Sequence record: OR844650.1
DNA length: 64,000 bases
Reading direction: 5' to 3' (one strand)
The notes beneath the pieces were generated by a model. The model saw only the letters and a list, made by a program, of their open reading frames with translations. It was not told where the DNA came from and ran no database searches. This document shows positions 32,414 to 32,504 of this stretch, one piece after another; the stretch's first letter is position 1; each line of letters begins with the position of its first letter. A program made the translations under genes and the position numbers.

Positions 32414-32504
32414 CGAAAGAGGTGGGATTTGAACCCACGAAGCGTTATTTCTAACACTTGCTCGCTTAGTAGGCGAGTGCAATCAACCGCTCTGCCACCC
32501 TTCC
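32414..32504 (-). tRNA. tRNA-Ser with unusual ACU anticodon
   Basis: CTCGC-CT-ACT-AA-GCGAG; long variable arm with GAAA loop; G73; D arm like tRNA-Ser(UGA) at 34014. Confidence 0.8.

Follow-up and report, generated by a model that had tools for sequence, protein, structure and literature searches.

A jumbo coliphage genome carries a serine-type tRNA gene with the anticodon ACU. We read it, with a probability of roughly 0.7, as a working phage tRNA gene whose product would be charged with serine, keep its A34 unedited and read AGU almost alone. What we observed directly is the gene with its fold, its strict conservation and wide occurrence among phages, and the codon bias. For expression, charging, non-editing and decoding range, we infer from the sequence together with published work on an engineered tRNA that shares the anticodon loop. 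The gene was found in a stretch of 64,000 nt from the sequence record OR844650.1. Here 'window' refers to this whole stretch rather than to the gene, and all coordinates are relative to window position 1.

In textbook wobble rules and recent reviews, unmodified A34 is nearly absent and confined to four-codon boxes. A natural split-box A34 tRNA that is fixed in cultivable E. coli phages (G17, Sharanji on K-12) and recurrent in viral metagenomes would provide a natural system for authentic A34 decoding in vivo and for the strictness of TadA toward near-cognate loops. It would also serve the question of whether phage tRNAs are a matter of codon supply or of defence evasion. A wider reading is that phages keep widespread natural serine tRNAs with unedited A34, occurring in more than 100 viral lineages and nearly absent from cells, that read only AGU in a split box, possibly for reasons beyond codon supply, such as insulation from a host factor acting on G34. 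If so, they would be the earliest known example of unmodified A34 being common in nature outside the four-codon boxes. This we hold tentatively, at slightly short of even odds.

Genome setting and gene structure

The window is 100% identical to Escherichia phage ECO103 4-12-1, with equal coordinates, and 98.7% identical to G17, phAPEC6 and Sharanji. All four are Asteriusvirus (Rak2-like) jumbo coliphages of ~350 kb. The phage DNA has a G+C content of 31-36%, and nearly all genes are on the minus strand. ARAGORN found seven tRNA genes in the window, all on the minus strand, and Rfam confirmed seven out of seven. The set consists of Thr(UGU), Asn(GUU), a 90-nt tRNA with anticodon CAU, Ser(ACU), Arg(UCU), Ser(UGA) and Gly(UCC). 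The features that concern us are the following.

32414..32504, minus strand: tRNA-Ser(ACU), 91 nt, type II, G73, no encoded CCA (ARAGORN and Rfam RF00005)
32468..32470, minus strand: anticodon ACU, read directly; T at 32470 reads as A34 on this strand
32466-32472, minus strand: 7-nt anticodon loop CUACUAA of tRNA-Ser(ACU), read directly
32515..32543, minus strand: putative sigma-70-like promoter, TTGACT-17-TAAAAT with TG before the -10 hexamer (consensus scan, 10/12 matches)
32316..32405, minus strand: tRNA with anticodon CAU, 90 nt, CCA encoded (ARAGORN; Rfam 50.3 bits)
32239..32311, minus strand: tRNA-Asn(GUU), third in the tRNA cluster (ARAGORN; Rfam 70.3 bits)
33933..34009, minus strand: tRNA-Arg(UCU) (ARAGORN and Rfam)
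34014..34103, minus strand: tRNA-Ser(UGA), phage paralogue (ARAGORN and Rfam)
34823-34895, minus strand: tRNA-Gly(UCC) (Rfam 41.7 bits, the lowest of the cluster)

ARAGORN called the gene as tRNA-Ser(act) at 32413-32504 on the minus strand. The Rfam RF00005 score over 32414-32504 was 49.9 bits, with a gathering threshold of 29 bits, and minimum-energy folding gave a long-armed cloverleaf. The acceptor stem has 7 bp, two G-U pairs among them; the D stem has 3 bp, the anticodon stem 5 bp, and the T arm is normal. The variable arm of 20 nt consists of an 8-bp stem and a GAAA loop, and the discriminator is G73. A first-pass annotation of the same DNA, which gave no strand, had described a serine-type tRNA with loop CUACUAA, a long arm, G73 and A34, and ARAGORN, Rfam and direct reading of the minus strand all bear this description out. 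The D arm of the paralogous tRNA-Ser(UGA) is close to that of tRNA-Ser(ACU).

Seryl-tRNA synthetase (SerRS) reads the long variable arm and the acceptor end, not the anticodon, and its identity elements are G73, G1-C72, G2-C71 and C11-G24. The window gene has G73, G1-C72 and C11-G24, but G2-U71; position 2-71 is G-C in the Ser(ACU) copies of the phages EJP2 and Munch. Host SerRS would charge tRNA-Ser(ACU) with serine, and because the enzyme ignores the anticodon, a serine tRNA with ACU stays within the standard code.

The gene is directly followed by CAA at its 3′ side, and CCA is thus not encoded. A nucleotidyltransferase of the CCA-adding type is encoded in each of G17, EJP2 and Munch, and the host has a CCA-adding enzyme of its own, so the absence of an encoded CCA is no obstacle. 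After trimming of the transcript, CCA would be added by the host enzyme or the phage enzyme.

The putative promoter ends 10 nt upstream of the 5′ end of the gene, and sigma-70-like sites in this region are as many as chance predicts, the site being a consensus match only. From this promoter of its own, tRNA-Ser(ACU) would be transcribed together with the downstream CAU and Asn tRNAs, the CAU tRNA gene being the next in the cluster, 8 nt downstream. Four public runs, RNA-labelled or possibly RNA, yielded contigs in which no variant is listed at 32470; their coverage is thin, and they are contigs only, in part possibly from DNA. These runs have no bearing on editing or expression.

Two neighbours of the gene have odd features. 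The CAU tRNA resembles the 74-nt CAU tRNA of EJP2 in its acceptor stem, anticodon arm and T stem, but its variable region is 13 nt longer and its T loop is an unusual UUAGAAU with A at position 56. The phage 121Q has a normal 75-nt CAU tRNA at the corresponding place. The 90-nt tRNA looks like tRNA-Ile2, with Met and, via lysidine, Ile as its candidate identities. In the tRNA-Gly(UCC), the D loop is atypical and one anticodon-stem pair is non-standard.

Conservation in named phages

All 91 nt of tRNA-Ser(ACU) are identical in 18 database records, which represent 17 named phages. Around this identical gene, the surrounding 4 kb is only 83% identical to the window in JNE01 and only 90% in 121Q. 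The EJP2 copy shares the anticodon arm with the window copy exactly and the D arm almost exactly, but is diverged in the acceptor stem, variable arm and T stem; EJP2 has a separate Ser(GCU) gene as well. A second group of 350-kb phages carries Ser(ACU) at ~74% identity to the window gene, namely Salmonella phages Munch, 7t3, SE_PL and PHA46, Klebsiella phage fENko-Kae01 and Erwinia phage Hallingskeid. In the Munch copy, all five pairs of the anticodon stem and the pairs of the variable arm are changed in a compensating manner, while the loop is unchanged. Rhizobium phages RHph_TM30, TM40 and Y65 and Xanthomonas phage XaC1 match too, and ACU was read in RHph_TM30 and XaC1, the two examined of these four.

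The CUACUAA loop is invariant among the window, EJP2, Munch, Hallingskeid, Rhizobium TM30 and Xanthomonas XaC1, and is kept in Ser(ACU) copies that are only 70-77% identical. When 11 Ser(ACU) tRNAs were aligned, RNAalifold gave a type-II cloverleaf with 22 of the 26 pairs preserved through double changes, and the long variable arm had compensatory changes in every one of these homologues. Relatives could have turned out to carry GCU throughout; instead, ACU stands in the 17 named phages and in the diverged copies. tRNA-Ser(ACU) is a real, strictly conserved gene of serine type.

It is barely conceivable that the gene is a sequencing or assembly error or a decaying pseudogene. The missing CCA and the two G-U pairs of the acceptor stem are its sole weak points. 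On the other hand, it is identical in independently named phages, its anticodon is conserved across diverged copies with covariation, and GenBank has the same tRNA-Ser(act) label in G17 and RHph_TM30. The sequencing error for which the first-pass annotation had left room is contradicted by the 91 nt standing unchanged in 18 records. Our literature search found no paper discussing a natural Ser(ACU/ACT) tRNA in phages.

The Ser(ACU) genes of the Munch group have A73 rather than G73 (L006:6000-6090 in Munch; L017:200-290 in Hallingskeid). A bacterial type-II tRNA with A73 has the leucine or tyrosine pattern, so the amino-acid identity of the tRNA in that group is less certain.

ACU and GCU within the Asteriusvirus/Rak2 group

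About half of the Asteriusvirus/Rak2 genomes carry a 90-nt Ser(GCU) instead of Ser(ACU), where hits of less than 100% identity were assigned by similarity. The Ser(GCU) carriers include PBECO4, BF17, E9.1, the Salmonella SD phages and RaK2. Both tRNAs are present in ph0011, Turkey3 and EJP2, and probably in JP4 and WPEC3. The Ser(GCU) of PBECO4, RaK2 and EJP2 is likewise a phage serine tRNA for the AGY box and is located in the same tRNA region. However, its body differs from that of Ser(ACU) throughout (D arm, anticodon stem and acceptor stem), so Ser(ACU) is not a point mutant of the phage Ser(GCU).

Two origins were rejected. Derivation by a G-to-A change from the phage's own Ser(GCU) is ruled out by the different body. 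Recent capture of the host serV gene followed by a G-to-A change was searched for by blastn against 5,426 complete E. coli genomes, and nothing matched.

Distribution in viral and cellular DNA

We scanned IMG/VR for a pattern in which the CUACUAA loop was fixed along with the T loop and some of the D arm. With ARAGORN applied to the pattern matches, at least 120 in number, at least 118 viral contigs carry Ser(ACU), with at least 80 distinct sequences. Among the matches listed, Ser(GCU) is also present in 2 of 118 Ser(ACU) loci. In a viral sample seeded by Ser(UGA), 24 loci have GCU, three have ACU and none of the 27 has both. Thus, ACU is a minority but regular choice in viruses, about one in nine. 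The first-pass annotation had regarded A34 as essentially limited to tRNA-Arg(ACG), which no longer holds once phages are counted, as Ser(ACU) is recurrent in viral DNA. One IMG/VR clade (L110) had no match among cultured phages.

The same pattern had only 30 matches in 185,579 cellular species genomes, mostly in metagenome bins but also in several Polynucleobacter isolates. In these isolates (L375, L376, L389, L391, L393, L394, L400 and L403), Ser(ACU) often stands in a row of three, Thr(CGU)-Gly(CCC)-Ser(ACU), and one copy is on a contig of 1.49 Mb. The Polynucleobacter Ser(ACU) may be a cellular or prophage-borne copy.

When the anticodon was masked, the nearest neighbour was another ACU tRNA for 79 of the 87 distinct ACU tRNAs, and none of the 87 had a GCU relative at 90% identity or higher. 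A FastTree of 258 serine tRNAs, built on ~90 columns, required 18 changes between ACU and GCU, compared with 68 ± 4 when the labels were shuffled. Judged by these comparisons, the ACU state is inherited and stable in several clades. Recent G-to-A drift, which the first-pass annotation had also held open, is refuted by the 17 identical phages, the retention of the loop at 70-77% identity and the lack of any GCU relative at 90% or above.

Two unrelated viral contigs have tRNA-Arg(UCU) genes (L003:51-127 and L004:3422-3495) whose 17-nt anticodon arm equals that of the window Ser(ACU) except for U34. Their anticodon neighbours ACU in one codon box, and the likeness of the arms is probably due to chance.

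Decoding and editing of A34

In tRNA-Ser(ACU), U36 stands where E. coli TadA needs a G, so A34 would stay adenosine. TadA requires the loop YUACGAA with G36 (PMC12255301), and single changes in the motif positions abolished editing (PMC12255301, PMC5630033); the phage loop CUACUAA with U36 lacks this substrate motif. At UACU sites across 72 species, 11 A-to-G mismatches were counted versus 16 expected, and at TACG sites 571 versus 18.5 expected (PMC12255301).

The same loop has been placed in E. coli by others. An engineered tRNA received the loop of tRNA-Arg2 with the anticodon ACU, which makes CUACUAA, and reassigned AGU at 9.4%, whereas AGG came to 0.36% and neither AGC nor AGA reached the detection level (PMC11066159). 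Sequencing of its reverse transcripts gave only A at position 34 (PMC11066159). The 7-nt loop of this tRNA is equal to that of phage tRNA-Ser(ACU), but the engineered tRNA has the archaeal M. jannaschii Tyr body and an orthogonal synthetase, while the phage tRNA is a natural serine tRNA. We expect A34 of the latter to pair with U in Watson-Crick geometry on the ribosome, so that AGU would be read almost exclusively. AGC would then be left to the single tRNA-Ser(GCU) of the host, and AGA and AGG to arginine tRNAs.

Two E. coli tRNAs are close to the phage tRNA in different respects. The serV product is a type-II serine tRNA for the AGY box with G73 and a long arm, and its loop is CUGCUAA compared with CUACUAA in the phage; however, it has G34, reads both AGC and AGU, has an encoded CCA, and its body is clearly different. 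On the other hand, tRNA-Arg2(ACG), encoded by argQ, has A34, and its anticodon arm is equal to that of the phage tRNA at 14 of 17 positions and its loop at six of seven, with differences only at the closing pair and position 36. This tRNA is of type I with G36 and is quantitatively edited to I34, whereas U36 breaks the UACG motif in the phage tRNA.

The latter likeness, being one to a natural TadA substrate, raises an alternative in which host TadA or another deaminase converts A34 to I34. The range of the tRNA would then resemble that of Ser(GCU) but be wider, with AGC read besides AGU and AGA read weakly. Overexpressed TadA could be cited in its favour too, since 25-30% of the edited sites were one base off TACG (PMC12255301, PMC5630033). 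We nevertheless consider editing highly unlikely, because the same-loop ACU tRNA in E. coli showed neither inosine nor reading of AGC or AGA, and because UACU sites have no editing excess across the 72 species. Moreover, I34 would put serine at AGA, which makes up 9.3 per thousand codons in the window. AGA is the codon of the same box that is open to misreading by an I34 or promiscuous A34 serine tRNA, and it is read by the phage tRNA-Arg(UCU). If tRNA-Arg(UCU) guarded against such misreading, it would be expected to accompany Ser(ACU); the two were not enriched together, and the trend, if any, ran the other way.

The deaminase genes of the phages argue against inosine as well. Among the phage genes listed in the Sharanji paper is a 'tRNA-specific adenosine deaminase'; this 'tadA' of Sharanji and slurp01 is a 163-aa gene, located in G17 at L008:1405-1896. 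Its product matches T4 dCMP deaminase (PDB 1vq2) with E = 6.6e-35 and scores 31.7 bits on the NCBIfam TadA model, for which the cut-off is 150. A phage-encoded TadA was rejected on these grounds, the gene being a dCMP deaminase of the T4 Cd type, and it is equally present in phages that have only Ser(GCU). By these matches, the 'tadA' annotation in Sharanji and slurp01 is misleading.

Another protein, of 122 aa (G17, L011:1492-1860), has the zinc-deaminase motifs HAE...PCxxC and a weak match to PF00383, and it matched nothing in PDB or NCBIfam. Its gene is conserved in jumbo phages, including phiKZ (gp260), cyanophages and phages of Aeromonas, Erwinia and Xanthomonas, and is also present in PBECO4 and RaK2. 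Being widespread in jumbo phages without Ser(ACU), it is not tied to Ser(ACU).

With A34 unedited, the phage tRNA would join few natural precedents. According to the summary given in PMC11066159, natural non-deaminated A34 occurs in Mycoplasma tRNA-Thr(AGU) and yeast mitochondrial tRNA-Arg(ACG). Both of these serve four-codon boxes, where loose reading is harmless. Unlike them, phage Ser(ACU) is viral and serves a box split between Ser AGY and Arg AGR.

Codon use and the replacement of G34 by A34

In the window ORFs, representing 64 kb only, AGT occurs 410 times and AGC 69 times (21.3 and 3.6 per thousand codons), and AGT is the most used serine codon. The T fraction of AGY is 0.86, the highest among the split boxes ending in Y, and is still 0.83 when AGTACT is left out. 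The corresponding counts in 42 annotated E. coli K-12 genes were 80 AGT and 195 AGC (5.4 and 13.2 per thousand). Thus, the cognate codon of tRNA-Ser(ACU) is much commoner in the phage than in the host, which is the criterion of codon compensation. ACA, AGA, UCA and GGA, the codons of the other phage tRNAs, are likewise enriched in the phage compared with the E. coli sample. So is AUA, which counts as a phage-tRNA codon if the CAU tRNA is lysidine-modified.

In the K-12 region examined, serV is the one annotated tRNA-Ser(GCU) gene, and we know of no AGY reader in K-12 besides it. tRNA-Ser(ACU) would add decoding capacity for AGU, the top serine codon of the phage, which the host reads only via G:U wobble. 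The first-pass annotation had suggested a tRNA tuned to AGU, and this is still the best reading, given the AGT:AGC ratios of 410:69 and 80:195 and the decoding by the engineered tRNA (PMC11066159).

Codon supply explains that a phage has an AGY-box serine tRNA at all, but gives no clear reason for A in place of G. Among viral contigs, the AGT preference was 0.70 in ACU carriers and 0.67 in GCU carriers (p = 0.48), and a difference (p ~0.01) was seen only in loci with three or more tRNAs. Since the two kinds of carriers are alike in AGT preference, codon use does not explain A for G.

A neutral origin could account for this similarity. The tRNA would then be an AGU reader in which A34 brings no gain over G34, the G-to-A change having been fixed under AT-biased mutation while the host covers AGC. 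The G+C content of the phage DNA (31-36%) and the roughly even split of the genus between ACU and GCU carriers are in keeping with such an origin. However, the ACU state is stable and forms clades, as the neighbour counts above indicate. In addition, the same viral contigs have A34 much less often in their other split boxes, where 2 of 133 tRNAs have A34 rather than G34, compared with 3 of 27 for AGY (Fisher p ~0.03, hand estimate), which argues against plain drift. Overall, we regard the neutral origin as quite unlikely.

In the viral clusters (IMG/VR loci L137-L373), A34 is fairly frequent relative to the G34 partners in four-codon boxes, as in Thr(AGU), Ser(AGA) and Leu(AAG). As for the other split boxes in these clusters, no A34 was seen for Asn, Asp, Cys and Ile, and single cases were seen for Phe, His and Tyr.

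Defence evasion is another way in which A instead of G could matter. The A34 tRNA would then chiefly stand in for the host Ser(GCU), or shield it, against a host anticodon nuclease or toxin for which G34 or the GCU loop is the recognition site. Phage tRNAs that evade nucleases by loop changes are documented (PMC10264068); in the type of van den Berg et al. 2023, a nuclease of the host cuts the host isoacceptor and the phage copy is altered where the enzyme binds. In E. coli, the HEPN nuclease ApeA cuts the tRNAs for Ser, Thr, Met and Pro. The rarity of loci with both ACU and GCU, and codon use that barely separates the two kinds of carriers, would fit as well. However, the papers we read describe no nuclease directed at tRNA-Ser(GCU), which leaves the escape from a nuclease proposed in the first-pass annotation unsupported. 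By giving up AGC, an A34 tRNA cannot fully replace the host tRNA. Furthermore, both tRNAs are present in five Asteriusvirus genomes (two of them probably), and codon compensation fits the whole set of phage tRNAs. Evasion therefore seems unlikely to us, and we keep AGU supply by an unedited A34 as the preferred reading.

The AGTACT hexamer

AGTACT occurs 163 times in the window, compared with 17 ± 4 expected, and is its most frequent hexamer. The first-pass annotation had treated AGT-ACT as an abundant codon pair. By coding phase, however, the counts are 63, 48 and 34, with 18 more between genes, and only 63 of the 410 AGT codons are accounted for by the hexamer. Since it occurs in three coding phases and between genes, AGTACT is a DNA-level word rather than a codon-pair effect, which points to a DNA-level signal, perhaps a binding or modification site. 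Two copies lie in the promoter region of tRNA-Ser(ACU), at 32523-32528 and 32543-32548. The palindrome has a weak preference for a preceding C and a following G.
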